Below, piece by piece: positions 571-63,820 of a stretch of 64,000 nt of DNA. Positions within the stretch are counted from its first letter, which is position 1. Each line of letters starts with the position of its first letter. A model generated the notes under the pieces. The model was not told the DNA's origin. It saw only the letters and a list, made by a program, of their open reading frames with translations, and searched no databases. The position numbers and the translations under genes were made by a program. The DNA comes from Glycera tridactyla (taxonomy: Eukaryota): NCBI GenBank assembly GCA_965644265.1, contig OZ286467.1:63302001-63366000 (forward strand), read 5' to 3'.

Positions 571-678
571 ATTTCCGCGTTCCGCCGATCAACACGATCG
601 GAGCTGTCAACTCATACTGATATGAAATTCACAGACACACTACATTGACCACTACATGTAGGCGTCATTTCAACACTT

Positions 679-717
679 CAAATCACATCAAATCACATCA
701 AATCACAATAATCACAC
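679..717. repeat. 10-bp minisatellite (aaatcacatc) x ~3.5
   Basis: Direct reading: caaatcacatcaaatcacatcaaatcacaataatcacac. Confidence 0.8.
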
Positions 718-1192: not shown

Positions 1193-1216
1193 AAGCACCA
1201 GCAGTAGGTACCACAG
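1193..1216 (+). CDS. Unit 1 micro-exon A (24 nt): EAPAVGTT
   Basis: ctttgctttcag|AAGCACCAGCAGTAGGTACCACAG|gtatgt. Confidence 0.88.
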
Positions 1217-4200
1217 GTATGTAAACACCAGATTCTATTTTTTGCCGTCAGTAGTACCAACCTCGCCAAATTGATCAAATTGACCAATATATGATATCAT
1301 CATCCATCATTTTCCTATGTGTATTCCGATTCATTCCAGGGCAAAGAAGCATGAGAGCAACAATAATTAGTTCCGGATTCTATAGTTGATCATCTATTCT
1401 CCCAAGTCTGTCCTAAAGATATTGGTACTCCAGATTGATCAGGTGCATCTCGAAAAATATATGTTGGCTATTTCATTCAAATGCAATGGATCATCACTGA
1501 CTTTGCATATGTGAGCCTCATCACAATCGACATTCATATGTCATTCGATCAAGTCGAAAATGCGAAAAAACTATTCATGGATGGCCATTTCATCAAAAAT
1601 TCTGTCACTCCAAAATATTATTATAATAATTTATCTTACTCACTTTGTTATCTGTGTCTACTTACAGCAGCCCCAGGAGCACCTACAACAGGTACGTGAA
1701 CACCAACAAAATGCGCAAGTGATTTCCCGTTTTCGATTTCATCATTGTTGGACTGTACCTGTATGTCCCAATCACATCTGTGGTCCATGGGCATAGACAG
1801 CAAGGTATTGAGTGTCATCGATGGAATTGGTCTAATAGAGATGGTGCCCATATGGATATATGGATGTATTGAGCACCCTCCTACTTTTGATCCTATTTTA
1901 TATTTGTATACTTCTAAGAATCACTCTTCACTCATTCCACCTTCCTCTGTATCTCAACTGCTTCATATATAATGACAAAATACTTTTTGAAGACCAATAT
2001 TACTGAATGTTCATCCTTTTTGCTTTCAGAAGCCCCAGCAGTGGCTACCACAGGTATGTTTACACCAGTTGTTATTAATTGCCATCATTGGTACCAACCG
2101 CTCAGTATTGATCAAACTAATCCATATATAGAATTTCATTATCGTTCATTTTTCCATGCATATCCTGATTCATTTCCTGGCCGAGAGGCATGACAGAAAA
2201 TAAAGAAAATTCTGAATTTGATACCATCTTTCAAATTTCACTGTGCTCATATGGATTTGCAACTCAATATTGCACTCTATCTTCTGACCATATCGTGTTC
2301 ATGTGCCCTCCAAAGTATGTGCAAAAGATATCGGCTCTTGGTATTGAAAGTGTGCATCTGAAAAAATATATGTTGACTAAGCCATTCAAATGAAAGGAAT
2401 TATTGATGGATGGCCACTAAACTGATAATCTGTGGTTTATAGGACATGAAGGTGTCGAGGGTCACTGTATGATCATCATGTAAAGGCTGTCTTCAATGTT
2501 ATCAGGATATCAGAGAATGACATAAATGACATTCTTTTTTTTTGTTTTTTGCAGGACCAGCAGCAACAACAGCAGGTACAAAAAGTGAAAAGGACGTAGA
2601 CCAGGAATACAAATACTTTCGACCCACTACTCCTCTCATTTGCCAAGATGAGGCATATTACAATTCTTTGCTGACGATAATACCGATGGAATGTAAACAA
2701 ATGATAATTGGAGAGCCAAGGTATTCTGTCATTGACTTGAAGTCAATGCCGATGGTGGTTAAACAAATAGTCCCACCTGAAGGAAAATATGTTACTCTTC
2801 ATCTGGTCATTGTTCCACTGTTTCCCTTGATTTGTCTTTTTTATCCCTTGTGCACCTCATCCACCTCAGTCATCCCTGAATCTTCAAGCAAGGGGACACA
2901 TCATCATGTTCAATTATTCGAGTCTATCTATCAAGTGAATGTCGTATTTGATACCATGCATGGCAAGGCACAAATCTGGATTCAAGCACTTGGCAAGGTA
3001 ATATTTCAGAAGCTAGATCTTCGAAAAGAATGGAAGGGCTGTGCTAAGATCATATTGTCATAGATGCAATAGGCACTTTGCCTAATGCATCATCGAAGAA
3101 TATCACGACAGTTTGCTCGACACAGGCAGGGGCATGAAATCCTAATTTTATTACTCAGATACTTCTCGACATGTCCTGTATTTATGTCAGCTAAAGAACA
3201 TGTTGAATCTCTCTTTTGCCCATGTAGGACTGACACCATTTGCTGGAGGCGAAGAACTGACAACGACAGCAGCTGAAGAGGAGGAAGAAGTCTTCACAAC
3301 TGGTAGGTTTGATGTCGAAAGCATGCTCTTGATGTATATTCTGCATTCGTCATATGAATCTTCATATCAAAAACTTCCACTTGAAGTATTCAATATCCAA
3401 TTGAATTTTCCAAAATGTTGTATATTTTTGCACACCTTCACGACAGATTTTACTTCTCTTCTATTTTAAACCCTAGTATGTTATCACAAGCCACATCTGA
3501 GTTACTGGAGTCAAATTCCTAGTCTATACGGGATATGTTTAACAATATTAGTAGAATGAGTTTCAATACTGATAGTCTTTCATGAGTTGACACTTTTCAT
3601 TCAAAAATGTCAGTGCACTCTCATTTTCGAATATGCCTGATGGTAGATTTCATGCCTCATGAAGTCAATATCCCAGCTGCTGTGAAATCATTGAGAGACA
3701 ACATTGAGAGAAAATTTCGAGAGAGAGTTTGAAACGAATGGGATTCTCGGTGCTCAATCAATCACTTTTTACAACCGTGGTGACTAGCACAAAGGATTGT
3801 TGGTCAACAGTTGATACCTCTTCAGAACTTTGATTCATTCTACTTACCTACATACCCATCGATTTCAAAATTGATGCATGTGTCCTGTTTGAGAATATCG
3901 GAGGAAGGATGACCTTCACTGAATATTTATCTTCATTGCTTTCAGGAGCACCAGCAGCTGCAACCACAGGTATGTTGACACCAGTTGTTATTCATGGTCG
4001 TCAGTTGTACCAACCTCACCAAATAGATCAAAATGACGCATATATTTGCTTACATCATCGTTTCAAATGGATTGGGCTCCCTTCTTATTCTGATCATGTT
4101 TTATTTGTGCATACTTTTGAGACCTATCCATCATTCATTACACCTACTTGTATATCTCATTCGTTCCAATAAAAAAGCAGAATACTTTGGAAGGACTAAT

Positions 4201-7200
4201 TTTACTGAATGATCATCTTCTTTGCTTTCAGAAGCACCAGAGGTACCCACCACAGGTATGCATACACAAGTTGTTATCAATTGCTGTCAGTTGTGCAGAC
4301 CCCACCAAATCTATCACAAATGGACCTATATATATATGATTTCATCACCGTTCATTTGTCGATGCAAATCCCAATTCATTCACAGGCCAAGACCCATGAG
4401 AGCACATATATGGTTGTGAATTAAACATCTTTAATATTTCAATGTGTATATCGGGAAATGCAACTCGATTGAGCACTCCATCCTCCAACCTTTCCTCCAT
4501 CTGCTCGCTCAAGTCTGTCTGAAAAACATTGGCTCTGAAGATTGGAGGGTCATATCTAAAAAATATATTGAGCAGTCAATTCAAATGAAATGGATCACCA
4601 ATAACATTGAGTATATGAGACTCATCCATGTGATTATCCATATGTCAATATATGGAGTCAAAAATGTTGAAATTATTGACGTATGGCTTCTTGACCGAAA
4701 ATTCCGTCCCTTTGAAATATCATTACAATGGTTGACCTATCTGACTCTGTATCTTTGTCTACTTCCAGCAGCCCCGGGAGCACCAACAACAGGTACGTGA
4801 ACACCAATTAGAATCGATATTTGATTCTACTAAATAAGCAAAATGAATACCCAGTCTCGATTTCATCATTGTTTGACTGTACTTGAAGGTACAAATCAAA
4901 TCTGTTAACATGGAAGGATTGAGATTCAATGTTGGTATTCGTCCCGGGGAGATAGTGCTTTCATGGATGTGTGGATGGAATGAGCACCCTCCTCATGCTG
5001 ATCATATTTCAATTTCTTATACTGCTGAGAACCATGCTTCATCCATTTCACCCATATCTATAGCAGTAGCTACCACAGGTATGTTACACCAGTTGTCATT
5101 TATTGCCATCAGTTGTACCAACCTCTCCATATTGATCAAACTAATCAATATGTACAATTTCATCATCGTTTCTTTGTCCATACGTATCCTGATTCATTTC
5201 CTAGGCGAGAGGCATGACAGCGAATATATAGACTTCATCCACTCCACCCACATCTATATCTCAGCCATTCAAATGATAATGCAGAATTACTTTGATAGAA
5301 CTAATTCTACTTAATATTCACACTCTTTGCTTTCAGAAGCCCCAGCAGCAGCTACCACAGGTATGTTCACACAAGTTGTTATCTTTTGCGGTCAGTTGTA
5401 CCAACCTCTCTGTAGTGATCAAACTAATCGATATATAGAATTTTATCATCGTTTATTTGTCCATACGTATCCTGAATCATTTCCTAGGCAAGAGGCATGA
5501 CAGGGAATATATAGACTTCATCCACTTCACCCACATCTATATCTCATCCATTCAAATGATAATGCAGAATTACTTTGGGAGAACTAATTTTACTTAATGT
5601 TCATCCTCTTTGCTTTCAGAAGCACCAGCAGTAGGTACCACAGGTATGTAAACACCAGATTCTATTTATTGCCATCAGTGGTACCAACCTCGCAAAATTG
5701 ATCAAATGGACCAATATATGATATCATCATCCATCATTTTCCCATGTGTATTCCGATTCGTTCCAGGGCAAAGAAGCATGAGAGCAACAATAATTAGTTC
5801 TGGATTCCATAGTTGATCATCTATTCTCCCAAGTCTGTCCTAAAGATATTGGTACTCCAGATTGATCAGGTGCATCTCGAGAAATATATGTTGACTATTT
5901 CATTCAAACGCAATGGATCATCACTGACTTTGTGTATATGAGCCTCATCACACTCGACATTCATATGTCATTCGATCAAGTAGAAAATGTGGAAAACTAT
6001 TCATGGATGGCCATTTTATCAAAAATTCTCGCACTCCAAGATATCATTATAATAGTTTATCTTACTCACTTTGTTATCTGTGTCTACTTACAGCAGCCCC
6101 AGGAGCACCTACGACAGGTACGTGAACACCAACAAAATGAGCAAGTGATTACCCATTTTCGATTTCATCATTGTTGGACTGTACCTGTATGTCCCGATCA
6201 CATCTGTGGTCCATGGGCATAGACAGCAAGGTATTGAGTGTCATCGATGGAATTGGTCTAATAGAGATGGTGCCCATATGGATATATGGATGAATTGAGC
6301 ACCCTCCTACTTTTGATCCTATTTATATTTATATACTTCTAAGAATCACTCTTCACTCATTCTACCTTCCTCTGTATCTCAACTGCTTCATAAATAATGC
6401 CGAAATACTTTTTGAAGACCAATAGTACTGAATGTTCATCCTTTTTGCTTTCAGAAGCCCCAGCAGTAGCTACCACAGGTATGTTTACACCAGTTGTTAT
6501 TAATTGCCATCAGTGGTACCACCAACTGCTCAGTATTGATCAAACTAATCCATATATAGGATTTCATTGTCGTTCATTTTTCCATGCATATCCTGATTAA
6601 TTTCCTGGCCGAGAGGCATGACAGAAAATAAAGAAAGTTCTGAATTTGATACCATCTTTCAAATTTCACTGTGCTCATATGGATATGCAACTCAATATTG
6701 CACTCTATCTTCTGACCATATCGTGTTCATGTGCCCTCCCAAGTATGTGCAAAAGATATCGGCTCTTGGTATTGAAGGTGTGCATCTGAAAAAATATATG
6801 TTGACTAAGCCATTCAAATAAAAGGAATTATTGATGGATGGCCACCTAACTGATAATCTGTGGTTTTTAGGACATGAAGGTGTCGAGTGTCACTGTATGA
6901 TCATCATGTAAAGGCTGTCTTCAATGTTATCAGGATATCAGAGAATGACATGAATGACATTCTTTTTTTTGTTTTTTTCGCAGGACCAGCAGCAACAACA
7001 GCAGGTACGAAAAGTAAAAAGGACGTAGACCAGGAATACAAATACTTTCAACCCACTACTCCTCTCATTTGCCAAGATGAGGCATATTACAATTCTTAGC
7101 TGATGATAATACTGATGCAATGTAAACAAATGATAATTGGAGAGTCAAGGTATTCTGTCATTGACTTGAAGTCAATGCCGATGGTGGTTAAACAAATAGT

Positions 7201-10200
7201 CCCACCTGAAGGAAAATATGTTACTTTTCATCTGGTCATTGTTCCACTGTTTCCCTTGATTTGTCTTTTATTATCCCTGGTGCACCTCATCCACCTCAGT
7301 AATCCCTGAATCTTCAAGCAAGTAGACACATCATCATGTTCAATTATATGAGTCTATCTATCAAGTGAATGTCGTATATGATAACGTGCATGGCAAGGCA
7401 CAAATCTAGAATCAGGCACTTGGCAAGGTAATATTTCAGAATCTAGATCTTCAAAAAGAATGGAAGGGCTGTGCTAAGATCATATTGTCATAGATGCAAT
7501 AGGCACTTTGCCTAATGCATCATCGAAAAATATCACGACAGTTTGCTCGACACAGGGATATGAAATCCAAATTTTATTACTCAGATACTTCTCGACATGT
7601 CCTGTATCCATGTCAGCTAAAGAACATGTTGAATCTCTCTTTTGCCCATGTAGGACTGACACCATTTGCTGGAGGCGAAGAACTGACAACGACAGCAGCT
7701 GAAGAGGAGGAAGAAGTCTTCACAACTGGTAGGTTTGATGTCAAAAGCATGCTCTTGATGTATATTCTGCATTCGTCATATGAATCTTCATATCAAAAAC
7801 TTCCACTTGAAGTATTCAATATCCAATTGAATTTTCCAAAATGTTGTATATTTTTTCAAACCTTCGCAACAGATTTTACTTCTCTTCTATTTTCAACCCT
7901 AGTATGTTATCACAAGCCACATCTGAGTTACTGGAGTCAAATTCCTAGTCTATACGGAATATGTTTGACAACTTTAGTAGAATGAGTTTCAATACTGATA
8001 GTCTTTCATGAGTTGACACTTTTCATTCAAAAATGTCAGTGCACTCTCATTTTCGAATATGCCTGATGGTAGATTTCATGCCCCATGAAGTCAATATCCC
8101 AGCTGCTGTAAAAGCATTGAGAGACAACATTGAGAGAAAATTTCGAGAGAGAGTTTGAAACAAATGGGATTCTCGGTGCTCAATCAATCACTTCTTACAA
8201 CCATGGTGACTAGCACGAAGGATTGTTGGCCAACAGTTGATACCTCTCCAGAACTTTGATTCATCCTACTTACCTACGTACCCATCGATTTCAAAATTGA
8301 TGCATGTGTCCTGTTTGAGAATATCAGAGGAAGGATGACCTTCACTGAATATTCATCTTCATTGCTTTCAGGAGCACCAGCAGCTGCAACCACAGGTATG
8401 TTGACACCAGTTGTTATTCATGGTCGTCAGTTGTACCAACCTCACCAAATTGATCAAAATGATGCATATATTTGCTTCCATCATCGTTCCAAATGGATTG
8501 GGCTCCCTTCTTATTCTGATCATGTTTTATTTGTGCATACTTTTGAGACCTATCCATCATTTATTACACCTACTTGTATATCTCATTCGTTCCAATAAAA
8601 AAGCAGAATACTTTGGAAGGACTAATTTTACTGAATGATCATCTTCTTTGCTTTCAGAAGCACCAGAAGTACCCACCACAGTTATGCATACACAAGTTGT
8701 TATCAATTACTGTCAGTTGTGCAGACCCTACCAAATCTATCACAAATGGACCTATATATATATGATTTCATCACCGCTCATTTGTCCATGCAAATCCCAA
8801 TTCATTCACAGGCCAAGACCCATGAGAGCACATATATGGTTGTGAATTAAACATCTTTAATATTTCAATGTGTATATCGGGAAATGCAACCTGATTGAGC
8901 ACTCCATCCTCCGACTTTTCCTCTATCTGCTCTCTCAAGTCTGTCTGAAAGACATTGGCTCTGAAGATTGAAGGGTCGTATCTAAAAAAAATATTGAGCA
9001 GTCAATTCAAATGAAATGGATCACCAATAACATTGAGTATATGAGACTCATCCATGTGATTATCCATATGTCAATATATGGAGTCAAAAATGTTGAAATT
9101 ATTGACGTATGGCTTCTTGACCGAAAATTCCGTCCCTTTGAAATATCATTACAATGGTTGACCTATCTGACTCTGTATCTTTGTCCACTTCCAGCAGCCC
9201 CGGGAGCACCAACAACAGGTACGTGAACACCAATTAGAATCGATATTTGATTCTACTAAATAAGCAAAATGAATACCCAGTCTCGATTTCATCATTGTTT
9301 GACTGTACTTGAAGGTACAAATCAAATCTGTTAACATGGAAGGATTGAGATTCAATGTTGGTATTCGTCCCGGGGAGATAGTGCTTTCATTGATGTGTGG
9401 ATGGAATTAGCACCCTCCTCATGCTGATCATATTTCAATTTCTTATACTGCTGAGAACCATGCTTCATCCATTTCACCCATATCTATAGCAGTAGCTACC
9501 ACAGGTATGTTACACCAGTTGTCATTTTTTGCCATCAGTTGTACCAACCTCTCCATATTGATCAAACTAATCAATATGTACAATTTCATCATCGTTTCTT
9601 TGTCCATACGTATCCTGATTCATTTCCTAGGCGAGAGGCATGACAGCGAATATATAGACTTCATCCACTCCACCCACATCTATATCTCAGCCATTCAAAT
9701 GATAATGCAGAATTACTTTGATAGAACTAATTTCACTTAATATTCACCCTCTTTGCTTTCAGAAGCCCCAGCAGCAGCTACCACAGGTATGTTCACACAA
9801 GTTGTTATCTTTTGCGGTCAGTTGTACCAACCTCTCTGTAGTGATCAAACTAATCGATATATAGAATTTTATCATCGTTTATTTGTCCATACGTATCCTG
9901 AATCATTTCCTAGGCAAGAGGCATGACAGGGAATATATAGACTTCATCCACTTCACCCACATCTATATCTCATCCATTCAAATGATAATGCAGAATTACT
10001 TTGGGAGAACTAATTTTACTTAATGTTCATCCTCTTTGCTTTCAGAAGCACCAGCAGTAGGTACCACAGGTATGTAAACACCAGATTCTATTTATTGCCA
10101 TCAGTGGTACCAACCTCGCAAAATTGATCAAATGGACCAATATATGATATCATCATCCATCATTTTCCCATGTGTATTCCGATTCGTTCCAGGGCAAAGA

Positions 10201-13200
10201 ACCTTGAGAGCAACGATAATTAGTTCTGGATTCCATAGTTGATCATCTATTCTCCCAAGTCTGTCCTAAAGATATTGGTACTCCAGATTGATCAGGTGCA
10301 TCTCGAGAAATATATGTTGACTATTTCATTCAAACGCAATGGATCATCACTGACTTTGTGTATATGAGCCTCATCACATTCGACATTCATATGTCATTCG
10401 ATCAAGTAGAAAATGTGGAAAACTATTCATGGATGGCCATTTTATCAAAAATTCTCGCACTCCAAGATATCATTATAATAGTTTATCTTACTCACTTTGT
10501 TATCTGTGTCTACTTACAGCAGCCCCAGGAGCACCTACGACAGGTACGTGAACACCAACAAAATGAGCAAGTGATTACCCATTTTCGATTTCATCATTGT
10601 TGGACTGTACCTGTATGTCCCGATCACATCTGTGGTCCATGGGCATAGACAGCAAGGTATTGAGTGTCATCGATGGAATTGGTCTAATAGAGATGGTGCC
10701 CATATGGATATATGGATGAATTGAGCACCCTCCTACTTTTGATCCTATTTATATTTATATACTTCTAAGAATCACTCTTCACTCATTCTACCTTCCTCTG
10801 TATCTCAACTGCTTCATAAATAATGCCGAAATACTTTTTGAAGACCAATAGTACTGAATGTTCATCCTTTTTGCTTTCAGAAGCCCCAGCAGTAGCTACC
10901 ACAGGTATGTTTACACCAGTTGTTATTAATTGCCATCAGTGGTACCACCAACCGCTCAGTATTGATCAAACTAATCCATATATAGAATTTCATTGTCGTT
11001 CATTTTTCCATGCATATCCTGATTAATTTCCTGGCCGAGAGGTATGACAGGAAATAAAGAAAATTCTGAATTTGATACCATCTTTCAAATTTCACTGTGC
11101 TCATATGGATATGCAACTCAATATTGCACTCTATCTTCTGACCATATCGTGTTCATGTGCCCTCCCAAGTATGTGCAAAAGATATCGGCTCTTGGTATTG
11201 AAGGTGTGCATCTGAAAGAATATATGTTGACTAAGCCATTCAAATAAAAGGAATTATTGATGGATGGCCACCTAACTGATAATCTGTGGTTTTTAGGACA
11301 TGAAGGTGTCGAGTGTCACTGTATGATCATCATGTAAAGGCTGTCTTCAATGTTATCAGGATATCAGAGAATGACATGAATGACATTCTTTTTTTTGTTT
11401 TTTGCAGGACCAGCAGCAACAACAGCAGGTACGAAAAGTAAAAAGGACGTAGACCAGGAATACAAATACTTTCAACCCACTACTCCTCTCATTTGCCAAG
11501 ATGAGGCATATTACAATTCTTAGCTGATGATAATACTGATGCAATATAAACAAATGATAATTGGAGAGTCAAGGTATTCTGTCATTGACTTGAAGTCAAT
11601 GCCGATGGTGGTTAAACAAATAGTCCCACCTGAAGGAAAATATGTTACTTTTCATCTGGTCATTGTTCCACTGTTTCCCTTGATTTGTCTTTTATTATCC
11701 CTGGTGCACCTCATCCACCTCAGTAATCCCTGAATCTTCAAGCAAGTAGACACATCATCATGTTCAATTATATGAGTCTATCTATCAAGTGAATGTCGTA
11801 TTGGTACCATGCATGGCAAGGCACAAATCTAGAATCAAGCACTTGGCAAGGTAATATTTCAGAATCTAGATCTTCAAAAAGAATGGAAGGGCTGTGCTGA
11901 GATCATATTGTCATAGATGCAATAGGCACTTTGCCTAATGCATCATCGAAAAATATCACGACAGTTTGCTCGACACAGGGATATGAAATCCAAATTTTAT
12001 TACTCAGATACTTCTCGACATGTCCTGTATCTATGTCAGCTAAAGAACATGTTGAATCTCTCTTTTGCCCATGTAGGACTGACACCATTTGCTGGAGGCG
12101 AAGAACTGACAACGACAGCAGCTGAAGAGGAGGAAGAAGTCTTCACAACTGGTAGGTTTGATGTCAAAAGCATGCTCTTGATGTATATTCTGCATTCGTC
12201 ATATGAATCTTCATATCAAAAACTTCCACTTGAAGTATTCAATATCCAATTGAATTTTCCAAAATGTTGTATATTTTTTCAAACCTTCGCAACAGATTTT
12301 ACTTCTCTTCTATTTTCAACCCTAGTATGTTATCACAAGCCACATCTGAGTTACTGGAGTCAAATTCCTAGTCTATACGGAATATGTTTGACAATTTTAG
12401 TAGAATGAGTTTCAATACTGATAGTCTTTCATGAGTTGACACTTTTCATTCAAAAATGTCAGTGCACTCTCATTTTCGAATATGCCTGATGGTAGATTTC
12501 ATGCCTCATGAAGTCAATATCCCAGCTGCTGTAAAAGCATTGAGAGACAACATTGAGAGAAAATTTCGAGAGAGAGTTTGAAACAAATGGGATTCTCGGT
12601 GCTCAATCAATCACTTCTAACAACCATGGTGACTAGCACGAAGGATTGTTGGCCAACAGTTGATACCTCTCCAGAACTTTGATTCATCCTACTTACCTAC
12701 GTACCCATCGATTTCAAAATTGATGCATTTGTCCTGTTTGAGAATATCAGAGGAAGGATGACCTTCACTGAATATTCATCTTCATTGCTTTCAGGAGCAC
12801 CAGCAGCTGCAACCACAGGTGTGTTGACACCAGTTGTTATTCATGGTCGTCAGTTGTACCAACCTCACCAAATTGATCAAAATGACGCATATATTTGCTT
12901 CCATCATAGTTCCAAATGGATTGGGCTCCCTTCTTATTCTGATCATGTTTTATTTGTGCATACTTTTGAGACCTATCCATCATTTATTACACCTACTTGT
13001 ATATCTCATTCGTTCCAATAAAAAAGCAGAATACTTTGGAAGGACTAATTTTACTGAATGATCATCTTCTTTGCTTTCAGAAGCACCAGAAGTACCCACC
13101 ACAGGTATGCATACACAAGTTGTTATCAATTACTGTCAGTTGTGCAGACCCTACCAAATCTATCACAAATGGACCTATATATATATGATTTCATCACCGC

Positions 13201-52200: not shown

Positions 52201-55200
52201 TAGTCTTTCATGAGTTGACACTTTTCATTCAAAAATGTCAGTGCACTCTCATTTACGAATATGCCTGATGGTAGATTTCATGCCTCATGAAGTCACTATC
52301 CCAGCTGCTGTGAAATCATTGAGAGACAACATTGAGAGAAAATTTAGAGAGAGAGTTTGAAACAGATGGGATTCTCGGTGCTCAATCAATCACTTTTTAC
52401 AACCTTATCGACTAGCACAAAGGATTGTTGGCCAACAGTTGATACCTCTTCAGAACTTTGATTCATCCTACTTACCTACTTACCCATCGATTTAAGAATT
52501 GATGCATGTGTCCTGTTTGAGAATATCGGAGGAAGGATGACCTTCACTGAATATTCATCTTCATTGCTTTCAGGAGCACCAGCAGCTGCAACCACAGGTA
52601 TGTTGACACCAGTTGTTATTCATGGTCGTCAGTTGTACCAACCTCACCAAATTGATCAAAATGACGCATATATTTGCTTCCATCATCGTTCCAAATGGAT
52701 TGGGCTCCCTTCTTATTCTGATCATGTTTAATTTGTGTATACTTTTGAGACCTATCCATCATTCATTACACCTACTCGTATATCTCATTCATTCCAATAA
52801 TAATGCAAAATACTTTGGAAGGACTAATTTTACTGAATGATCATCTTCTTTGCTTTCAGAAGCACCAGAAGTACCCACCACAGGTATGTATACACAAGTT
52901 GTTATCAATTGCTGTCAGTTGTGCAGACCCCACCAAATTTATCACAAATGGACCTATATATATATGATTTCATCACCGTTCATTTGTCCATGCAGATCCT
53001 GATTCATTCACAGGCCAAGACCCATGAGAGCACATATATGGTTGTGAATAAAACATCGTCAATATTTCGATGTGCATATCTGGAAATGCAACTCGATTGA
53101 GCACTCTATCTTCCGACCTTTTCTCTATCTTCTCTCTCGAGTCTGTCTGAAAGACATTGGCTCTAAATATTGAAGGGTTGTATTTAAAAAAATATATTGA
53201 GCAGTCAATTCAAATGAAATGGATCACCAATAACATTGAGTATATGAGACTCATCCATGTGATTATCCCTATGTCAATATATGGAGTCGAAAATGTGGAA
53301 ATTATTGACGTATGGCCTCTCGACTTGAAATTCTGTCCCTTTGAAATATCATTACAATGGTTGACCTATCTGACTCTGTATCTTTGTCTACTTCCAGCAG
53401 CCCCAGGAGCACCAACAACAGGTACGTGAACACCAATTAGAATCGATATTTGATTCTAATAAATGAGCAAAATGAATACTCATTTCCGATTTCATCATTG
53501 TCGGACTGTACTTGAATGTACAAATCAAATCTGTGAACATGGAAGGATTGAGGTTCACTGTTGGAATTCGTCTCGGGGAGATGGTGCTTTCATGGATGTG
53601 TGGATGAAATGAGCACCCTCCTCATGCTGATCATATTTTAATTTCTTATTCTGCTGAGAACCATGCTTCATCCATTTCACCCATATCTATAGCAGTAGCT
53701 ACCACAGGTATGTTACACCAGTTGTTATTTATTGCCATCAGTTGTGCCAACCTCTCCATATTGATCAAACTAATCAATATATACAATTTCATCATCGTTT
53801 ATTTGTCCATACGTATCCTGATTCATTTCCTAGTCGAGAAACATGACAGCGAATATATAGACATCATCCACTTCACCCACATCTATATCTCAGCCATTCA
53901 AATGATAATGCGGAATTACTTTGGTAGAACTAATTCTACTTAATGTTCATCCTCTTTGCTTTCAGAAGCCCCAGCAGCAGCTACCACAGGTTAATTCAAT
54001 ACCGTGCTTCTCCTTCAAATTAAGCATTTGCCCTCGGCTAACTGCCCACGCTCGAACTTCACAACATAAGTGAAGATTTTCCAAAAGTACTCCCCCTCCG
54101 ATCCGCACCAATATCCCCGAAGAGGATCCCCTTCGGCGGATGTAAACATACGCGCATCCGCACCTGCGCACTTCGTATTTTTTCGCTTCGCTTTGCTCAG
54201 CAATCACGCGTTGAAATACCTCGGCTCTTTTTCAGGATTATTCTTGATATTTCAAGCCCGCGTTCATTCTATTGTATTATTCATGTTTACGGCGTTCTTG
54301 CGCCACTTATTCACTCAGCGCCGACGCCGTATATAGTGTGTAATTCGTGTAGTTAGACGGGCCAATTTCGGGTGCCCTGGCACCCGGCGTTGTCCGGTGA
54401 CGCTCTGCGTTGTCAGACTGCAGGAAGCACTTTCGTCGTGCGTAGTGAATTTACAGTGAACTGTAGTTGTGTTCACTACACCTTATTTTGTTTATTCTTC
54501 CATGAAACGCTGTCACTCCAATTGTTGCGTTTCATGAGAATTGTTCATTTTGTCCGGTGATACAACGTGTTGACTTTGTTGCACATTTGAAATGACCTAT
54601 CCCAGCATAGGTTTGTGATTTTCATATCATTACAGGTGCTCTATAACAACCATGTCGTCAGGACAAAAGCTTGGCCTATGTGGCCATTTTGTAGCTGCTT
54701 GGGACCAGCACCCGGTTTGCCCATCTTGTAGACCATGTGGAAAACCGAGTGAAGATTCAGAACAGAATGTTGTATGCAACATTTGTAGTGAGTGGTCTCA
54801 GGAGCAGTGGGACCGTTTTCAGTCTAGGCGTACTTACAAATCCAAAAATAGGTCGCCTTCAGTTAGCTCTTCACAGTCTGAAAAATCTCATTCAGTTAAA
54901 TCCTTCAAGCTCAAAACCGCGTCAGTGAAAGTTGAAAGGTTGGCTGAATCAACTTGTGTTGAGTTAGGTCCTACATCTAAGAAAGCTAGGCAAACTCAGT
55001 CAGCTTTAGCTAGATTGGCCGATGCTTCTAGTGAGTCAGAAAACAGTGCGTCTGATCAACCGATGAGCTCTGTCCGTCCGTCACCTAGATCTTATTCTGA
55101 GGCTCTCAGACAGACAGTTAGTCATTCTCCTAAAGTTTCTTTCAAGACACCTTGTTTGACATCCTTAGGTAACACTTCTAGGATTCAAAAGAGAGTTTCT

Positions 55201-58200
55201 AAGAAGATCACGACTCACAGTAGCTCTTCTGACAAGGAGGTGAATCTGGAAGTCCCGTCCATTGCGGTGTCTGTTCAGAAGTCACCGGACACTGGAAACT
55301 TATGTAAGGAGGATTTTAATTGTTCTCCGGCTAAGTCGACAGTGTCCAGTCATGAAGAGAGGCATACGGACACTGTGTCCGGTGCACTGAGCCCTACACA
55401 ACTTGTAGTATTCAACTCAGACGATGAAGCTGACTCATCTGTCCGTGGTCCGGTCGATGTATTGCCAGTACTGCCGGCCAATGAAGTCAGCTCTCAGTTA
55501 GAGTTACTAGAAACTAGTCAGATTGATTCCCCTAAATCAGTCCGTTCAAGTTCTAGCAGCAGAATATCCGGGGTTCAGTTTGTTGTTAAATTGGACAACA
55601 AGACTTCTCTATCTGATCAGAGTAAGACTGCACTGGGAAGTCTTCTCAATACTTCCGTGGGTTTTTCTTTGTTTGACAAACATTTCACTGCTTCATACAA
55701 GAAGAGTCAATGTTCATTATCAGATAGGTTTGTGGAGAAACAAAATCCAGTTATTCCTAGAGTGACCTCCCCTCAGGTGGTTCTAACTCAGGATGAGTCC
55801 GGTAGGACCAGGAAATCTTGTCCGTTGAGTATTCAACCAGTGTTGACAAAATCAATTGTGTCTGCTTAATCTCAGTCTAGTAAACAGACCACAGCAATTC
55901 CAGGCATATCTCAGCTTAAACTGACTTCTGATGTCCATACAACTCAGTCTAAGTCTCAAACTCAGTCTAAGACATCTAGCTCATCGGACAAACTTAAAAC
56001 TGGTTCTTCGGACAAACCTAAATCTGGTTCTTCCGACAACCCAAGGTCTGGTTCTTCGGGAAAACCTAAATCTGGTTCTTCGGTTAAACCAAAATCTGGT
56101 TCTTCGGTTAAACCAAAATCTGGTTCTTCGGACAAACCGAAATCTGGTTCTTCAGACAAGCCAAGATCCGACAAACCAAAATCTGGTTCTTCAAAAACTT
56201 CTGGGACTCAACATTCATCTAAGTCCAAGCCACCGGACAAATCTAAGTCTGGTCCACCGGACAAAGGGAAACCCATTTCTCAGAGTGTTAAGCTTAAACC
56301 AGTTCTATCTCAGACAAAGATTGCTCCTAGAATGACTGTAGCGCAGGTTATTCAGCAACAGATAGGTCAGGTTCCTACGCCAGGAGCTGTTCAAACTGTT
56401 ATGTCCGGTATGTCCGGTAACCAGAGTATATTACCAGGTATATTTGGTTCAGAATCGGATAACGAGTCAGACGTTAAGTCTTTATCAGAAAGTGATCCTA
56501 ATTCTAGTGGAAACCCTACTTCAGGACTGCCAATGGGCAGGCCCGCAGCTACAGGATCGCCTAAAAAGATTCCGCATATTATTCCCTCAGTTATACCTGA
56601 TCCAACTGTGATTCAGAATGCTACTCAACAAAGAACTCTGATTGACATTCTAGACTGGTGGTCAGCCAATAAACCGTCTCAGACTGCCCCTGTAGCTAGG
56701 GTTCCATCCCCTAAACTCATCCCACACACTGCCACAAGTCAGTCACCTGTTCAGATGGGTCCTCCCCAACAGGTGGTGCTAGATCCTTCTGCTAGGCTAA
56801 TTCTGGCCAAAGTAGAAGCGATGAGAGAAGAGTTTAAGGAGGTAAAGGAGGCATGCAGAAAGAGACCTTTGGAAGAAGGTGACTCAATGCATTCTTCTCA
56901 ATCAGAGGCAACAGAGAATCAAGCTCCGGTGCATAAAAAGCGGATGAAAGCCTTTAGGAAATATGCAGCGGAGTCGCTGGCACAATATGTTCCCCAACCT
57001 GATCCAGCCAGTAGAGGAAATCTTGGGGGTATAACAGCTAGCAAGGTGGACACTTCATTTGCGGCAGAAACTAGGACTAAGGATGTAGAGTTTCAGTCAG
57101 AGTCATCTTTACCTCTATCCCCTCTCTTGGTAAATGTGCAGAAGATTCTGGACGCAGCCTTACAGGGTGAGGAAAAAGATGAACCACCTCAATCAGTTAA
57201 TACTCCTCTTAGTGAGTTTGTATTAGGAGAGGGAGGTCAAGCTGAGGCTATGTCAAGGACATTTAAACCTAGTTTCCCAAAATTCTATGGTTGCAATCCT
57301 CAGGTTTATAAAATACGTGCTGGAGCAACCAAAGCAGACTATTTGGTCAGTCCACCTACTCTAGATTCGGAGTATGCATCTCATGGGGGGACGGCTACCA
57401 TAAATGATGTGAAACCTTCTCAAGATGAGTTTATGTTGAGAGATTGTCTGAAAATAATCTCTTATATAGATATGGCTCTCGCTGCAGGTGTCACAGCGAC
57501 GGAAGACGAAGTACTTGATTCTGCTGAAGTCAGACAGAAAGCCAGAGACTCTATGAGAGTAGGGGTTAGAGCTATAGATCACTTAGCCTCACTTATTGCC
57601 AAAGTCTCGGGAAATTTGGAATTAAATCGACGTTCCAATGCCTTGAAGTCTCTGCCCTTCGATGATAGAACCAAGGCTCAATTGAGAGTTCTTCCATTAG
57701 GTCACTCCACTCTCTTCGCGGGTAGACTTGATGATGCTTTTGATCGCTCATCGGAAATCCAACGTAAAAGAAGAGAGATGGAACACGATTATGAAAGGTC
57801 GAAATCCAAGAAGCAAACTGAGTCCAAATCGGGAGCTCATCAGGAAGCTTCTACTTCTAAGTCTTGGAGGAAGTCTTCTGGTAGGAGAGGAGGAAATTCT
57901 GGCAGAGGCAGAGGAAGAGGCAGAGGGCAACAGCAGAAATCGTCTGACAATCAAAACAGTCAGAATCAGACTCAGAATAAATCTGAGACCCCCAGGTTCT
58001 TCAGTAAGAAAAGGGGTCGAGGTCGTGGTTCTAAGCCCTAGGATGGGGGGCGTCACTTCCCAATTTCTAGTGGGTGCAAGACTACAGAATTTTGTAGCAG
58101 CTTGGCAGAGCATAACAAACAATCAGTTCATTTTAGACATGATCAGAGAGGGATTAACTTGGACCTTTCAAAATCCACCTGTGCTATCGACAAAATGGCT

Positions 58201-61200
58201 TCCTTTTTCTCTACCGAGGGTAGGGAATCCAAAAAGAGAGGCCCTTCTAGAAGAAATTCGCATGATGTTGGAAAAGAAGGCCATTTCCCCTATTATACCA
58301 GATCAGTCACCAGGATTCTACAGCCGGATATTTCTGGTAACCAAGTCCACAGGGGGTTATCGACCGATAATCAATTTGAAACCTCTGAACCAATATATAT
58401 TCAATCAGAGGTTCAAAATGGAAACAACGAGGTCGATAGTGAAAGCCGTATCACAAGGAGATTGGACAGTGTCCATAGATCTCAAAGATGCGTACTTTCA
58501 CGTACCCATCCATGTGGACTTCCAGAAGTATCTGCGCTTTGCTCTGTCTCCGACGGAAGGCTACGAATTTCATGCTCTCCCGTTCGGATTGTGCTCTGCC
58601 CCTTGAGTCTTCACTATGCTAGTTCGAGAGGTGGCGCAACACCTTCATATGAAAGGGATAAAATTCCACTATTACCTGGACGACTGGTTGCTCAGGCACC
58701 AGGACCCGAAACAGCTTCAGATACATCTGACCTACACTTTGGCATTAATTCGCAAGTTAGGTTGGATAGTAAACGAAATGAAGTCAGATCTTATTCCAAG
58801 CCAAACATTCGTTTACCTGGGCATGGACTTCAACACGTCCTTGTCCCTGGTTCGTCCTACCCTCAAGCGAGTTCAGAAACTAGAGGGTTGGGTGAGGCTG
58901 TTTCGGAGAGTGCGAATACAACCAGCTCGTTCAGTCCTCAGACTTCTAGGACATATGTCCAGCCTTTCAGACACTATTCGTCTGGGGCGACTCCACATGA
59001 GACCACTTTAGTTGGCTCTTCTCAGCCAGTGGAGTCCGTTCCAGGACGATCCAGACCAGTTTGTTCTGTTACCAGACGAGGTTCTTCTAGATCTTCTCTG
59101 GTGGAGCGATCGGAGACACTCTTTAGAAGGAGTTCCATTGGTGATACCAGAACCATCATTAACTCTAATGACGGATGCGTCTCTGGTAGGGTGGGGAGCC
59201 CACATGGTGAAAGATGGTTTTCGTCGGGAAGTGTCAGGCTTATGGCCGGAACACTACAAGGACAGGTCGATAAACTCCCTGGAGCTGGAAGCCATTCTTC
59301 TAGCAATACAGGAGTTTTGTTTGATGATGTCCAACCAAGTAGTGCTGGTTTTGTCGGACAGTTCCACGGCTGTGGCCTATCTAAGCAATCAAGGAGGCAC
59401 CCAGTCTTCCCTCCTGTGTGGACTAACATGGAAAGTGTTCAAGAAGACGGAAGCACACAACATTTCTCTTCGTGCGAGACATATACCCGGCAAGAGAAAT
59501 GTGCTAGCCGACTCATTGTCAAGAACCTCTCCAGTCCAGACAGAATGGGAGCTCCTTCAATCAGTGTTCAACAGGATAGTTCAGAAGCTCAACCTCTCTC
59601 CGACAGTGGATCTGATGGCGACACCTTACAACAAGAAGCTGCCAGTGTTCGTGTGTCCCTTTCCAGAAGCAACAGCACTGGCAGTAGACGCGCTGTCAAT
59701 GTCGTGGGAGGGGCTAGGAGTAGCATACATTTTTCCCCCAACATCCATGATTCGCGATGTTCTGAACAAGCTGAGAGGGACAGATCTAATAATGATATGC
59801 ATAGCTCCCTGGTGGAAGAACCAATCTTGGTTCGTAGATCTGCTAGAAATGTCAATAGACTTACCCCTAGAGCTTCCACTTCCTCGGAACATTCTAACAC
59901 AGAAAGTGTCAGGCAAACTGGTCAACCACTTCCGACCCCAGGTGCTGAATCTTCACGCCTGGTGTCTATCCGGAGTAACCTCTCCAGAAAAGGTTTTTCA
60001 GCAGAGGCAGTCGAGCGCATCTCTCGACCTACACGCCAATCCACAGCCAGAGTGTATGATGGCCGATGGGTACGCTGGGAATCTTGTTGCTCCCAGCATC
60101 AAGTGGATAAAGAGCGTCCTGCTATGAATTTAGTAGCTGACTTCCTTCTTTCTCTTTGGAATTCAGGAATGGCTTATGAAACTATTAAAGGCTATCGATC
60201 GGCAATCAATTCAGTGTTGTCTCGCTCTGGTATAAGAATCGCGGATTCTTCTGAAATTAATGACTTGCTGAAGAACTTTGCTCTGGAGAGGCCAGTGCTT
60301 CATAAATCAATTCCTCAGTGGAATTTACCGTTGGTCTTATCGTACCTTCGCTTTCACCCTTTTGAACCAGTGGAAGAAATATCTCTTCCTTACCTGGCTA
60401 AAAAGGCTGCCTTTTTGATAGCACTGGCCTCCGGTAGACGCCGGAGTGAGATTCATGCACTCTCGGGTCTTCCGGATTCCGTTAGATTCTCTCGAGATTT
60501 ATCCAAGGTCTCGCTCATTTGTGAACCTGGTTTCCTCTCTAAGAATCAGAAGCCTGACGGACAGTCTCCGATAATTCAGATTCCAGCCTTGAAGATTACC
60601 CAAGGGGTATCTCAAGCTGACCGATTACTTTGCCCGGTCAGGGCATTGGAATGTTTTTACAGACGGTCTTTACCCGGTCGGGGTAATCGCCGTAAACTGT
60701 TTTATGATCCTTCTTCATTGTTGGATAAGGACATGCGTGTGGATCGCATTTCCAGATGGGTACAAGACATCGTCAAGGGTGCATATTTGGCATCAGGACT
60801 TGATCCTGATTCTATTGGAGATCATGTTTCGGCTCATGAGCTCAGAGCCTTTTCAGCCTCTTGGCGCATGTTTAACCGTTCTTGTTCCTTGGAAGAAGTT
60901 ATGAGATCAGCTTTTTGGCGATCTCGTTCTACTTTTGGAACATATTACCTGAGGGACATGTGTGGCCAGGCAATGGACCTTTACTCTTTGGGACCCATTG
61001 TAGCTGATCAAGCTGTAATAGTTCCTCCTGACTAGTTTTTCAGTATTCTGAAATAAGTCATATTTGTATAGGTAGTACCCACCATCCGTGTCTTATTCGG
61101 ATGCTTAATTTGAAGGAGAAGCACGGTATTGAATTAACCGAAACCCAGGTTTTTCTAACCTGGGGGTTAATACTATACCTGCTTCTCCTTCAAATCTGAT

Positions 61201-63820
61201 TCTCCCTCCCGTCCTCCCCGCACTATTGTTGTGGTGTGTATATACGAAGTGCGCAGGTGCGGATGCGCGTATGTTTACATCCGCCGAAGGGGATCCTCTT
61301 CGGGGATATTGGTGCGGATCGGAGGGGGAGTACTTTTGGAAAATCTTCACTTATGTTGTGAAGTTCGAGCGTGGGCAGTTAGCCGAGGGCAAATGCTTAA
61401 TTTGAAGGAGAAGCAGGTATAGTATTAACCCCCAGGTTAGAAAAACCTGGGTTTCGGTATGTTCACACAAGTTGTTATCTTTTGCGGTCAGTTGTAACAA
61501 CCTCTCTGTAGTGATCAAACTGAACGATATATAGAATTTCATCATCGTGTATTTGTCCATACGTATCCTAAATCATTTCCTAGGCGAGAGGCATGACCGG
61601 GGATATATAGACTTCATCCACTTCACCCACATCTATATCTCATCCATTCAAATGATAATGCAGAATTACTTTGGGAGAACTAATTTTACCTAATGTTCAT
61701 CCTCTTTGCTTTCAGAAGCACCAGCAGTAGTTACCACAGGTATGTAAACACCAGATTCTATTTATTGCCGTCAGTAGTACCAACCACGCCAAATTGATCA
61801 AATGGACCAACATATGATATCATCATCCATCATTTTCCCATGTGTATTCCGATTCGTTCCAGGGCAAAGAAGCATGAGAGCAACAATAATTAGTTCTGGA
61901 TTCTATAGTTGATCATCTATTCTCCCAAGTCTGTCCTAAAGATATTGGTACTCTAGATTGATCAGGTGCATCTCGAAAAATATATGTTGACTATTTCATT
62001 CCAATGCAATGGATCATCACTGACTTTGCATATATGAGCCTCATCACATTCGACATTCATATGTCATTCGATCAAGTCAAAAATGTGGAATATTATTCAT
62101 GGATGGCCATTTTATCAAAAATTCTGTCACTCCAAAATATTATTACAATAATTTATCTTACTTACCTTGTTATCTGTGTCTACTTACAGCAGCCCCAGGA
62201 GCACCTACAACAGGTACGTGAACACCAACAAAATGAGCAAGTGATTACCCATTTTCGATTTCATCATTGTTGGACTGTACCTGTATGTCCCAATCACATC
62301 CGTGGTCCATGGGCATAGACAGCAAGGTATTGAGTGTCATCTATGGAATCGGTCTAATAGAGATGGTGCCCATATGAATATATGGATGAATCCAGCACCC
62401 TCCTACTTTTGATCCTATTTTATATTTGTATACTTCTATGAATCACTCTTCACTCATTCTACCTTTCTCTGTATCTCAACTGCTGAAAAAATAATGCCAA
62501 AATACTTTTTGAAGATCAATACTACTGAATGTTCATCCTCTTTGCTTTCAGAAGCCCCGGCAGTAGCTACCACAGGTATGTTTACACCAGTTGTTATTTA
62601 TTGCCATCAGTGGTACCAACCTCTCAGTATTGATCGAACTAATCCATATATAGAATTCCATTATCCTTCATTTTTCCATGCATATCCTGATTCATTTCCT
62701 GGCCGAGAGGCATGACAGAAAATAAAGAAAGTTCTGAATTTGATACCATCTTTCGACTTTCACTGTGCTCATATGGATATGCAACTCAATATTGCACTTT
62801 ATCTTCTGACCATATCGTGTTCATGTGCCCTCTAAAGTATCTGCAAAAGATATCGGCTCTTGGTATTGAAGGTGTGCATCTGAAAAAATATATGTTGACT
62901 AAGCCATTCAAATGAAAGGAATTATTGATGGATGGCCACTAAACTGATAATCTGTGGTTTATGAGACATGAAGGTGTCGAGTGTCACTGTGTGATCATTA
63001 TGTAAAGGCTGTCTTCAATGTTATTAGGATATCAGAGAATGACATGATTGAAATTCATTTTTTTTGCAGGACCAGCAGCAACAACAGCAGGTACGAAAAG
63101 TAAAAAGGATGTAGACCAGGAATACAAATACTTTCAACCTACTACTCCTCTCATTTGCCAAGATGAGGCATATTACAATTTTTTGCTGATGATAATACCG
63201 ATGGAATGTGAACAAATGATAATTGGAGAGTCGAATGTATTCTGTCATTGACTTGAAGTCAAGGCCGATGGTGGTTAAACAGATAGTTCCACCTGAAGAA
63301 AATATGTTACCTTTTATCTGGTCATTGTTCCACTGTTTCCCTTGTTTCGTCTTTTTTTATCATCCCTGGTGCACCTCATCCCTCTCAGTCATCCCTGAAT
63401 CTTCAAGCAAGGGGACACATCATCATGTCCAATTATATGAGTCTATCTATCAAGTGAATGTCGTATATGATACTGTGCATGGCAAGGCACATATCTGGAT
63501 TCGAGCACTTGGCAAGTTAATATTTCAGAAGCTAGATCTTCAAAAAGAATGGAAGGGCTGTGCTAAGATCATATTGTCATAGATGAAATAGGCACTTCGC
63601 CTGATGCATCATCAAAGAATATCACGACAGTTTGCTGGACACAGGGATATGAAATCTAAATCTCATTTTTACTCAGATACTTCTCGACATGTCCTGTATT
63701 TATGTCAGCTAAAGAGCATGTTGAATCTCTCTTTTGCACATTTAGGACTGACACCATTTGCTGGAGGTGAAGAACTGACAACGACAGCAGCTGAAGAGGA
63801 GGAAGAAGGCTTCACAACTG
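1193..63820 (+). CDS. Internal portion of a multi-micro-exon gene encoding a mucin-like Ala/Thr/Pro/Glu-rich repeat protein (~93 aa per unit, ~1170 aa in window; no start or stop visible)
   Basis: Ten exon types per unit, each with a pyrimidine tract + AG and a GT donor (gtatgt/gtatgc/gtacgt/gtacga/gtaggt). All lengths are multiples of 3, all phase 1, and no stops occur in the joined frame. Most exon variants noticed between units are synonymous. Confidence 0.88.
1668..1691 (+). CDS. Unit 1 micro-exon B (24 nt): AAPGAPTT
   Basis: gtctacttacag|CAGCCCCAGGAGCACCTACAACAG|gtacgt; NAGNAG acceptor. Confidence 0.87.
2030..2053 (+). CDS. Unit 1 micro-exon C (24 nt): EAPAVATT
   Basis: tttttgctttcag|AAGCCCCAGCAGTGGCTACCACAG|gtatgt. 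Confidence 0.88.
2555..2575 (+). CDS. Unit 1 micro-exon D (21 nt): GPAATTA
   Basis: Long T tract ..tttgttttttgcag|GACCAGCAGCAACAACAGCAG|gtacaa (gtacga in other units). Confidence 0.85.
3228..3302 (+). CDS. Unit 1 exon E (75 nt): GLTPFAGGEELTTTAAEEEEEVFTT
   Basis: ctcttttgcccatgtag|GACTGACACC...TTCACAACTG|gtaggt. Copies start at 7654, 12077, 16499, 20925, 25349, 29772, 34195, 38619, 43029, 47444, 51859, 63746. Confidence 0.88.
3946..3969 (+). CDS. Unit 1 micro-exon F (24 nt): GAPAAATT
   Basis: cttcattgctttcag|GAGCACCAGCAGCTGCAACCACAG|gtatgt. Confidence 0.88.
4232..4255 (+). CDS. Unit 1 micro-exon G (24 nt): EAPEVPTT
   Basis: cttctttgctttcag|AAGCACCAGAGGTACCCACCACAG|gtatgc. Confidence 0.86.
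4769..4792 (+). CDS. Unit 1 micro-exon H (24 nt): AAPGAPTT
   Basis: ctttgtctacttccag|CAGCCCCGGGAGCACCAACAACAG|gtacgt; paralog of exon B. Confidence 0.87.
5064..5078 (+). CDS. Unit 1 candidate micro-exon I (15 nt): AVATT
   Basis: cccatatctatag|CAGTAGCTACCACAG|gtatgt; equals the last 15 nt of a C-type exon; weak pyrimidine tract. Confidence 0.55.
5337..5360 (+). CDS. Unit 1 micro-exon J (24 nt): EAPAAATT
   Basis: ctctttgctttcag|AAGCCCCAGCAGCAGCTACCACAG|gtatgt. Confidence 0.88.
5620..10045 (+). repeat. Array unit 2 (4426 bp); exon G donor mutated
   Basis: Exons A 5620, B 6094, C 6455, D 6984, E 7654, F 8372, G 8658. Confidence 0.97.
10046..14468 (+). repeat. Array unit 3 (4423 bp)
   Basis: A 10046, E 12077; exon F donor variant gtgtgt. 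Confidence 0.97.
14469..18890 (+). repeat. Array unit 4 (4422 bp)
   Basis: A 14469, E 16499; unit-1-like C-E introns. Confidence 0.97.
18891..23316 (+). repeat. Array unit 5 (4426 bp); exon G donor mutated
   Basis: A 18891, E 20925, G 21929; near-copy of unit 2 through exon H. Confidence 0.97.
23317..27740 (+). repeat. Array unit 6 (4424 bp)
   Basis: A 23317, E 25349. Confidence 0.97.
27741..32163 (+). repeat. Array unit 7 (4423 bp)
   Basis: A 27741, E 29772. Confidence 0.97.
32164..36586 (+). repeat. Array unit 8 (4423 bp)
   Basis: A 32164, E 34195; near-identical to unit 7. Confidence 0.97.
36587..41007 (+). repeat. Array unit 9 (4421 bp); hybrid between the two unit subfamilies
   Basis: A 36587, E 38619; type-I sequence up to ~37.9 kb, type-II variants from ~38.1 kb. 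Confidence 0.95.
41008..45418 (+). repeat. Array unit 10 (4411 bp), subfamily II
   Basis: A 41008 (EAPAVVTT), E 43029; 4-bp intron deletion before exon B. Confidence 0.97.
45419..49833 (+). repeat. Array unit 11 (4415 bp), subfamily II
   Basis: A 45419, E 47444. Confidence 0.97.
53989..54178 (+). repeat. DIRS left ITR
   Basis: 54005-54178 is the reverse complement of 61242-61415 (174 bp); the outermost ~16 bp differ from the right ITR, as expected for DIRS non-identical ITRs. Confidence 0.96.
54611..54635 (+). promoter_or_regulatory. Candidate 3' splice acceptor / conserved leader motif 16 nt upstream of gag ATG
   Basis: gtttgtgattttcatatcattacag|gtgctctataacaaccATG; the core is shared with 615-636 (minus strand). 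Confidence 0.4.
54652..58041 (+). pseudogene. gag: DIRS ORF1 (gag-like), 1129 codons with one in-frame TAA at 55867-55869
   Basis: Track ORFs 54652-55869 and 56332-58041 share a frame, and 55870-56331 is open in it. N-terminal Cys/His cluster (CGHF..HPVCPSC..C..CNIC), central Ser/Lys low-complexity region, C-terminal RR..L..LP....LFAG motif of DIRS gag type, RG-rich tail. Confidence 0.85.
55981..56193 (+). repeat. 24-nt coding repeat (SSDKPKSG) x ~8-9 within gag
   Basis: tct tcg gac aaa cct aaa tct ggt and variants, in the gag frame. Confidence 0.9.
58043..60127 (+). pseudogene. pol: DIRS pol: reverse transcriptase - RNase H - adenine methyltransferase-like, two in-frame stops (58604-58606 TGA, 59009-59011 TAG)
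   Basis: Track ORFs 57728-58606, 58616-59011 and 59012-60127 share a frame. Motifs: VGARLQNF, YSRIFLVTK..GGYRPIINLK, IDLKDAYFHVPI, LPFGLCSAP*VFT, YLDDWL, TDASLVGWG, INSLELEA, SDSSTAVAY, HIPGKRNVLADSLSR, DLMA..N, YIFPP, APWW..QSWF. Probable ATG at 58043 follows the gag stop by one base. Confidence 0.93.
58102..61035 (+). CDS. DIRS tyrosine recombinase ORF (977 aa open frame; recombinase domain in the C-terminal ~340 aa)
   Basis: ALASGRRRSEIHAL, LCPVRAL, HELRAFSAS, FWRS..TFGTYYLRD fit the R..HxxR..W..Y catalytic set; the N-terminal ~675 codons overlap pol in another frame; the true start is uncertain. Confidence 0.93.
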   Translation: MAEHNKQSVHFRHDQRGINLDLSKSTCAIDKMASFFSTEGRESKKRGPSRRNSHDVGKEGHFPYYTRSVTRILQPDISGNQVHRGLSTDNQFETSEPIYIQSEVQNGNNEVDSESRITRRLDSVHRSQRCVLSRTHPCGLPEVSALCSVSDGRLRISCSPVRIVLCPLSLHYASSRGGATPSYERDKIPLLPGRLVAQAPGPETASDTSDLHFGINSQVRLDSKRNEVRSYSKPNIRLPGHGLQHVLVPGSSYPQASSETRGLGEAVSESANTTSSFSPQTSRTYVQPFRHYSSGATPHETTLVGSSQPVESVPGRSRPVCSVTRRGSSRSSLVERSETLFRRSSIGDTRTIINSNDGCVSGRVGSPHGERWFSSGSVRLMAGTLQGQVDKLPGAGSHSSSNTGVLFDDVQPSSAGFVGQFHGCGLSKQSRRHPVFPPVWTNMESVQEDGSTQHFSSCETYTRQEKCASRLIVKNLSSPDRMGAPSISVQQDSSEAQPLSDSGSDGDTLQQEAASVRVSLSRSNSTGSRRAVNVVGGARSSIHFSPNIHDSRCSEQAERDRSNNDMHSSLVEEPILVRRSARNVNRLTPRASTSSEHSNTESVRQTGQPLPTPGAESSRLVSIRSNLSRKGFSAEAVERISRPTRQSTARVYDGRWVRWESCCSQHQVDKERPAMNLVADFLLSLWNSGMAYETIKGYRSAINSVLSRSGIRIADSSEINDLLKNFALERPVLHKSIPQWNLPLVLSYLRFHPFEPVEEISLPYLAKKAAFLIALASGRRRSEIHALSGLPDSVRFSRDLSKVSLICEPGFLSKNQKPDGQSPIIQIPALKITQGVSQADRLLCPVRALECFYRRSLPGRGNRRKLFYDPSSLLDKDMRVDRISRWVQDIVKGAYLASGLDPDSIGDHVSAHELRAFSASWRMFNRSCSLEEVMRSAFWRSRSTFGTYYLRDMCGQAMDLYSLGPIVADQAVIVPPD
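61101..61195. other. DIRS internal complementary region (ICR)
   Basis: 61101-61139 is the reverse complement of 53989-54027; 61137-61195 is the reverse complement of 61400-61458; the halves overlap at acc (= GGT). Confidence 0.96.
61242..61458 (-). repeat. DIRS right ITR plus right extension
   Basis: ITR 61242-61430; extension 61431-61455 contains hairpin cccaggtt-agaaa-aacctggg. Confidence 0.95.

Follow-up and report, generated by a model that had tools for sequence, protein, structure and literature searches.

A homogenised tandem array of symmetric micro-exons that probably encodes the repeat region of a very large mucin-like protein

In the polymorphic mucins of Schistosoma mansoni (SmPoMuc), a 27-bp exon and its intron together form a tandem genomic repeat of 1 kb (PMC2576457). 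At most about 20 such repeats are found in a small gene of 15 exons, the introns being homogenised to more than 93% by concerted evolution (PMC2576457). Schistosome micro-exon genes (MEGs) have 10-20 exons; these are for the most part only 6-81 bp long, mostly with lengths that are multiples of three, account for most of the coding sequence and are separated by much longer introns. They encode small secreted proteins and are difficult for automatic annotation (PMC10526429). A third design is that of MUC16 (CA125), in which each 156-aa tandem repeat is encoded by five exons (PMC3431878). Within the collection of papers searched, no relevant report of micro-exon mucins outside flatworms was found.

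The locus described here fills most of a 64-kb window, a term used below for the whole stretch of DNA that was analysed (64,000 nucleotides). With a G+C content of 38% and clear intron-like signals, the sequence is eukaryotic in character. The window holds a tandem array of 13 units on the + strand, the 13th being cut by the window edge (Table 1). Ten short predicted exons, named A to J, were located in each complete unit. Their lengths are 24, 24, 24, 21, 75, 24, 24, 24, 15 and 24 nt, respectively, which sum to 279 nt of coding sequence (93 aa), or about 6% of the unit; the introns are 258-655 nt long. Pattern searches across the whole window retrieved 125 segments, the order of which is strictly (ABCDEFGHIJ)x12 + ABCDE. 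Exon E of unit 13 ends at position 63820, beyond which the array continues to the window edge. We propose that this array most probably represents the interior of a very large gene, where the repeats of its product are encoded; that product would be a secreted or surface protein, acidic, heavily O-glycosylated and mucin-like. No signal peptide, start or terminal exon was found in the 64-kb window, and we read the gene as extending beyond it.

Table 1 Coordinates of the array, of its predicted exons and of the inserted elements (positions in the window)
Feature	Position	Strand	Remarks
Tandem array of ~4.42 kb units	1158..64000	+	Anchor spacing 4411-4427; interrupted 53990-61456
Exon A starts (= unit starts), units 1-13	1193, 5620, 10046, 14469, 18891, 23317, 27741, 32164, 36587, 41008, 45419, 49834, 61716	+	
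Unit 1 exon A	1193..1216	+	24 nt, EAPAVGTT; acceptor ttgctttcag, donor gtatgt, phase 1-1
Unit 1 exon B	1668..1691	+	24 nt, AAPGAPTT; acceptor ctacttacag, donor gtacgt
Unit 1 exon C	2030..2053	+	24 nt, EAPAVATT
Unit 1 exon D	2555..2575	+	21 nt, GPAATTA; acceptor tttttttgcag
Unit 1 exon E	3228..3302	+	75 nt, acidic 25-aa segment with two Phe
Unit 1 exon F	3946..3969	+	24 nt, GAPAAATT
Unit 1 exon G	4232..4255	+	24 nt, EAPEVPTT
Unit 1 exon H	4769..4792	+	24 nt, AAPGAPTT
Unit 1 exon I	5064..5078	+	15 nt, AVATT; shortened C-type copy
Unit 1 exon J	5337..5360	+	24 nt, EAPAAATT
Units 2-12, exons A-J at homologous positions	5620..53989	+	
Unit 2 exons A-E	5620-5643, 6094-6117, 6455-6478, 6984-7004, 7654-7728	+	
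Unit 2 exons F-J	8372-8395, 8658-8681, 9195-9218, 9490-9504, 9763-9786	+	
Unit 13 exons A-E	61716-61739, 62190-62213, 62552-62575, 63070-63090, 63746-63820	+	
Inactivated exon-G donor, TT	8682..8683 (unit 2) and 21953-21954 (unit 5)	+	
DIRS-like retroelement	53990..61456	+	7,467 nt; inserted at exon J / intron boundary, unit 12
Terminal part of a different inserted element	1..1157	.	J-A intron homology begins ~1158

The ten AG/GT-bounded short segments per unit that a preliminary description had reported were all recovered. Both flanks, AG before and GT after, are present in 123 of the 125 segments; in the remaining two, exon G of units 2 and 5, TT stands in place of the GT donor. One small correction concerns exon D of unit 1, which lies at 2555-2575. 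Pyrimidine content upstream of the acceptors is 0.70-0.90, and the motif CTAAT stands at -36 in the introns preceding exons A, G and J. The prevailing donors are CAG/GTATGT or CAG/GTACGT (the slash marks the exon end), and exon D has gtacga as its donor except in unit 1, where it is gtacaa. On the + strand of one unit, nine of the ten matches to AGGTRNG coincide with proposed exon ends, as against two matches in all on the minus strand. The splice sites themselves show no significant deficit of variable columns relative to introns (7.4% at donors and 6.7% at acceptors, as against 9.9% in introns).

An unbiased scan of a unit for AG..GT-bounded, phase-1, stop-free segments behind a pyrimidine tract recovered the proposed exons, exon A lying outside the scanned range. 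It returned one weak extra candidate (27955-27972, donor GTACTC), which was not retained, and no further credible exon in the long introns. Separately, tandem NAGNAG acceptors (cagAAG, cagCAG) were observed at exons A, B, C, G, H and J in all units (e.g. 5614-5622), where they could move the 3' splice site by one codon and keep the frame.

All exons are of phase 1-1 and end in G, and their four distinct lengths are all divisible by three. Each predicted junction restores a codon starting with G, for Gly, Glu or Ala. Joined over the window, the exons give 3,516 nt, that is, 1,172 codons with 0 stops in the phase-1 frame, while the remaining two + frames of the joined exons contain 63 and 14 stops. 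The stop-free, mucin-like 93-aa repeat expected after joining is hence confirmed, in a single open + frame. This predicted repeat is made of xAPxxxTT octapeptides and of the acidic segment encoded by exon E. Only eight amino acids occur in the joined product (A 350, T 302, E 153, P 150, G 99, V 66, L 26 and F 26 out of 1,172); Ser, Cys, Lys and Arg are absent. The composition (T 25.8%, P 12.8%, A 29.9%) corresponds to the Thr/Pro-rich tandem repeats of a mucin-type (PTS) domain. Pro and Thr together make up about 39% of the residues, or about 43% when exon E is excluded, which is borderline by the usual composition cut-offs. Longer ORFs running through exon D (2542-3063) and exon E (e.g. 7515-7985) are present in some near-identical units only. 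They were set aside as intron read-through because they are not conserved across the diverged units.

The exons vary far less than the introns that separate them. In units 1-12, variable columns amount to 7 of 268 in exons (2.6%) and to 389 of 3,943 in introns (9.9%; Fisher p=1.1e-5), counts that overstate the number of independent events since the units are non-independent through gene conversion. When ten segments with the exon lengths were placed randomly in intron space, 29.5 +/- 6.3 variable columns were expected, and none of 20,000 trials reached 7 or fewer. Exon variation lies below intron variation for each of the four base types; composition therefore does not account for the deficit. 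Exon E is identical across units 1-12, and the 60-column windows that begin at alignment columns 2040 and 2060 contain no column that varies. In addition, six of the seven exon variants in units 1-12 are A/G changes at codon position 3, all synonymous (binomial ~0.007), the seventh being Gly to Val. In unit 13, exon E shows two further changes, one of them synonymous and the other Val to Gly.

The same asymmetry is found in an older duplicate inside the unit. When ABC is compared with GHI, the exons are 87% identical, as against 72% and about 200 gap columns for the introns. Gaps in the exons are confined to an in-frame 9-nt shortening that gives exon I, where an internal AG serves as acceptor and the loss leaves the frame intact. 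Exons B and H (unit 1 H compared with unit 2 B) show three differences, all at codon position 3. Overall, the exons are under purifying selection on the peptide, in the proposed frame and strand. The exon/intron contrast, the synonymous bias, the asymmetry of the duplicate and the in-frame length changes support the earlier view of the locus as a coding array of symmetric micro-exons.

Unit boundaries were set by exon-A anchors, and a repeated 30-mer used as anchor recurred with a spacing of 4,411-4,426 bp. Pairwise identity between units ranges from 94.1 to 99.8%. Units 2-3 and 5-8 constitute one block in which the units are at least 99% alike, and units 10-12 a second block of similarity. 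Unit 9 is intermediate; units 1, 4 and 13 are more diverged, unit 13 being the most diverged of all (94-96% identity). Units 2 and 5 are three units apart, yet they are 99.8% identical and have the exon-G donor mutation in common, which argues for a recent exchange; in terms of sequence, this near-identity points to gene conversion or to a block duplication. At a smaller scale, Tandem Repeats Finder detected a nested 283-bp sub-repeat (2.3 copies per unit, about 87% identity). Moreover, the first ~130 nt of the introns that follow A, C, F, G, I and J can be aligned among the paralogous modules (e.g. 5644-5780). These intron starts show ordinary between-unit variation, and so look like common ancestry rather than constraint.

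We suggest that the array arose in two steps. By duplication and divergence, an exon-plus-intron module of about 283 bp would first have grown into a unit of ten exons and 4.42 kb. This unit would then have been amplified at least 13 times, unit similarity being maintained by unequal crossing-over or gene conversion. In the transcript, the micro-exons would be spliced by intron definition and most of them included, giving at least 1,172 residues from the window. The peptide suggests that its Thr-Thr pairs, with Pro three or four residues later, would be densely O-glycosylated. The damaged exons, namely G in units 2 and 5 and J in unit 12, may be tolerated because the exons are symmetric, so that skipping any one of them leaves the frame intact. 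In vertebrates, mucin stalks are encoded by single large exons. A more general and frankly tentative idea is that this animal may build giant extracellular glycoprotein stalks from homogenised arrays of symmetric micro-exons. The locus would then hold the longest known run of consecutive micro-exons in a gene, spliced efficiently by intron definition, and unequal crossing-over together with exon skipping could adjust the length and composition of the product.

The exons could also be real and be used in another way, as combinatorial cassettes. Transcripts would then carry subsets of them and encode length and sequence variants, as in schistosome MEGs and SmPoMuc, rather than one constitutive product. 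Several features are compatible with such a use: phase 1-1 exons ending in G can be joined in frame in any subset, tandem NAGNAG acceptors offer in-frame alternatives, and exons with dead or displaced donors remain in otherwise intact units. However, the uniform strong sites and short introns suit constitutive splicing equally well, and all ten exon types are under selection. We consider a purely combinatorial use rather unlikely, and retain a product in which most exons would be included.

The array is interrupted in unit 12 by an insert whose ends are ambiguous by 2 nt, the dinucleotide GT being present at both junctions. Its termini are perfect 174-nt inverted repeats (54005-54178 and 61242-61415), and a 66-nt internal complement was also found. 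DIRS elements characteristically encode a reverse transcriptase and RNase H, use a tyrosine recombinase in place of an integrase, and have inverted termini as well as an internal region of complementarity. A Pfam search of the insert ORFs gave nothing at the default threshold; the matches appeared after the threshold was relaxed and the remaining overlapping frames were included. RVT_1 is above cut-off (57728-58603, E=3.7e-8), and matches to RNase H, Dam-like and Phage_integrase families are weak, below cut-offs and in overlapping frames. These sequence features lead us to read the insert as young and DIRS-like, with weak calls for the recombinase and for RNase H. As a result of the insertion, exon J of unit 12 is followed by an adjacent GTTAAT donor, the original GTATGT now lying 7.5 kb away. 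An ORF of the insert also contains a 24-nt tandem repeat (7.7 copies, 55984-56168), which encodes a Ser/Asp/Lys/Pro-rich peptide repeat. The other inserted element, at the beginning of the window, stops 35 nt upstream of unit 1 exon A, just before a branch-point-like CTAAT; its identity with the DIRS-like insert is limited to 72% over 65 nt.

Two retroelement insertions and three damaged donors within 64 kb might be taken as signs of a recently dead or silent exon array, that is, of a relic of a coding repeat that now sits within an intron or at an unexpressed locus and has had too little time to decay. But the units have diverged by up to 6% and exon changes are still almost only synonymous, no frameshift or stop is seen among the 125 exons, and neither insertion disrupts an exon sequence, both being located in introns. 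A dead array is thus very improbable. Finally, the idea of a non-coding macrosatellite, with splice-like flanks and an open frame that are accidental in a purine/pyrimidine-biased repeat, can practically be dismissed: low-complexity sequence can remain open by chance, and the joined segments are likewise free of stops in two frames of the reverse strand, but the frame is open only after exact removal of the intervening 94%, AG/GT flanks are confined to the + strand, and a codon-position-3 bias, a lower exon variability and in-frame length differences are unexpected for a satellite.

Homologues of the predicted product were sought at the protein and DNA levels. With phmmer, a 156-aa ORF containing exon E had a single match among 1.84 billion representatives, a bacterial-type repeat protein of 26% identity that we rejected as spurious. 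A word-index search of proteins between 86 and 273 aa, queried with the exon-E region, gave nothing, nor did a DNA scan of metagenome contigs for an exact 32-nt exon-E pattern. As a control, the 977-aa ORF of the inserted element was searched, and its best relatives are only 27% identical. The libraries are thus probably without this genome, which makes the blank searches weak evidence.

If the array is spliced as predicted, more than 100 exons of 15-24 nt would be recognised in succession, which would be an extreme natural test of short-exon definition. A sequence that looks like a macrosatellite could then conceal a large protein that ORF-based and standard gene finders would miss, and catalogues of mucin and extracellular-matrix genes in non-model invertebrates would be systematically incomplete. 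The design would also tie protein length directly to repeat copy number, each exon loss being frame-neutral; in this simple way, a glycoprotein of the surface or of mucus could vary rapidly.

As compared to the described systems, the array resembles SmPoMuc in that a mucin repeat peptide comes from micro-exons, with the exon and its flanking intron tandemly amplified and the introns homogenised. However, it has ten exons of four lengths per 4.42-kb unit, with a nested duplication of modules, instead of one 27-bp exon per unit. At least 13 units and 125 exons lie within the window, and the peptide is different, being Ser-free and acidic; no sequence similarity to SmPoMuc was detected. The likeness to MEGs lies in the short exons: apart from exon E, the exons of a unit measure 15-24 nt, and all lengths are divisible by three. 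Unlike this locus, MEGs are not amplified macrosatellite units. With no fewer than 125 exons and 1,172 residues in the window, the array departs from the small products and 10-20 exons of that family, and neither the word-index nor the phmmer search with exon-E sequence found relatives. We would thus describe the locus, by analogy, as working like a MEG without belonging to the MEG family.

Spider flagelliform silk genes and the titin PEVK region encode repetitive structural or elastic proteins by means of iterated exon-intron modules with homogenised introns. Their exons are larger, their chemistry is different and they are not known to have micro-exons of 15-24 nt. Kringle IV-2 of LPA is a multi-exon coding unit repeated in a tandem, in-frame array. 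Here also, the repeated unit is a multi-exon coding macrosatellite, since the 279-nt unit is in frame and the order ABCDEFGHIJ is kept 12 times. The units of MUC16 and LPA nevertheless correspond to folded domains (SEA and kringle, respectively) made from exons of ordinary size, whereas micro-exons here specify 93 Cys-free residues of low complexity; as with SmPoMuc and MEGs, sequence similarity to MUC16 was not detected. The proposal, made at the outset, that the locus combines micro-exon and multi-exon-repeat designs is supported by these comparisons; its novelty had been overstated, SmPoMuc already being a tandem micro-exon-plus-intron unit. Rather than a wholly new design, the locus can be viewed, on these analogies, as an enlarged version of the SmPoMuc principle merged with multi-exon units of the MUC16/LPA type.
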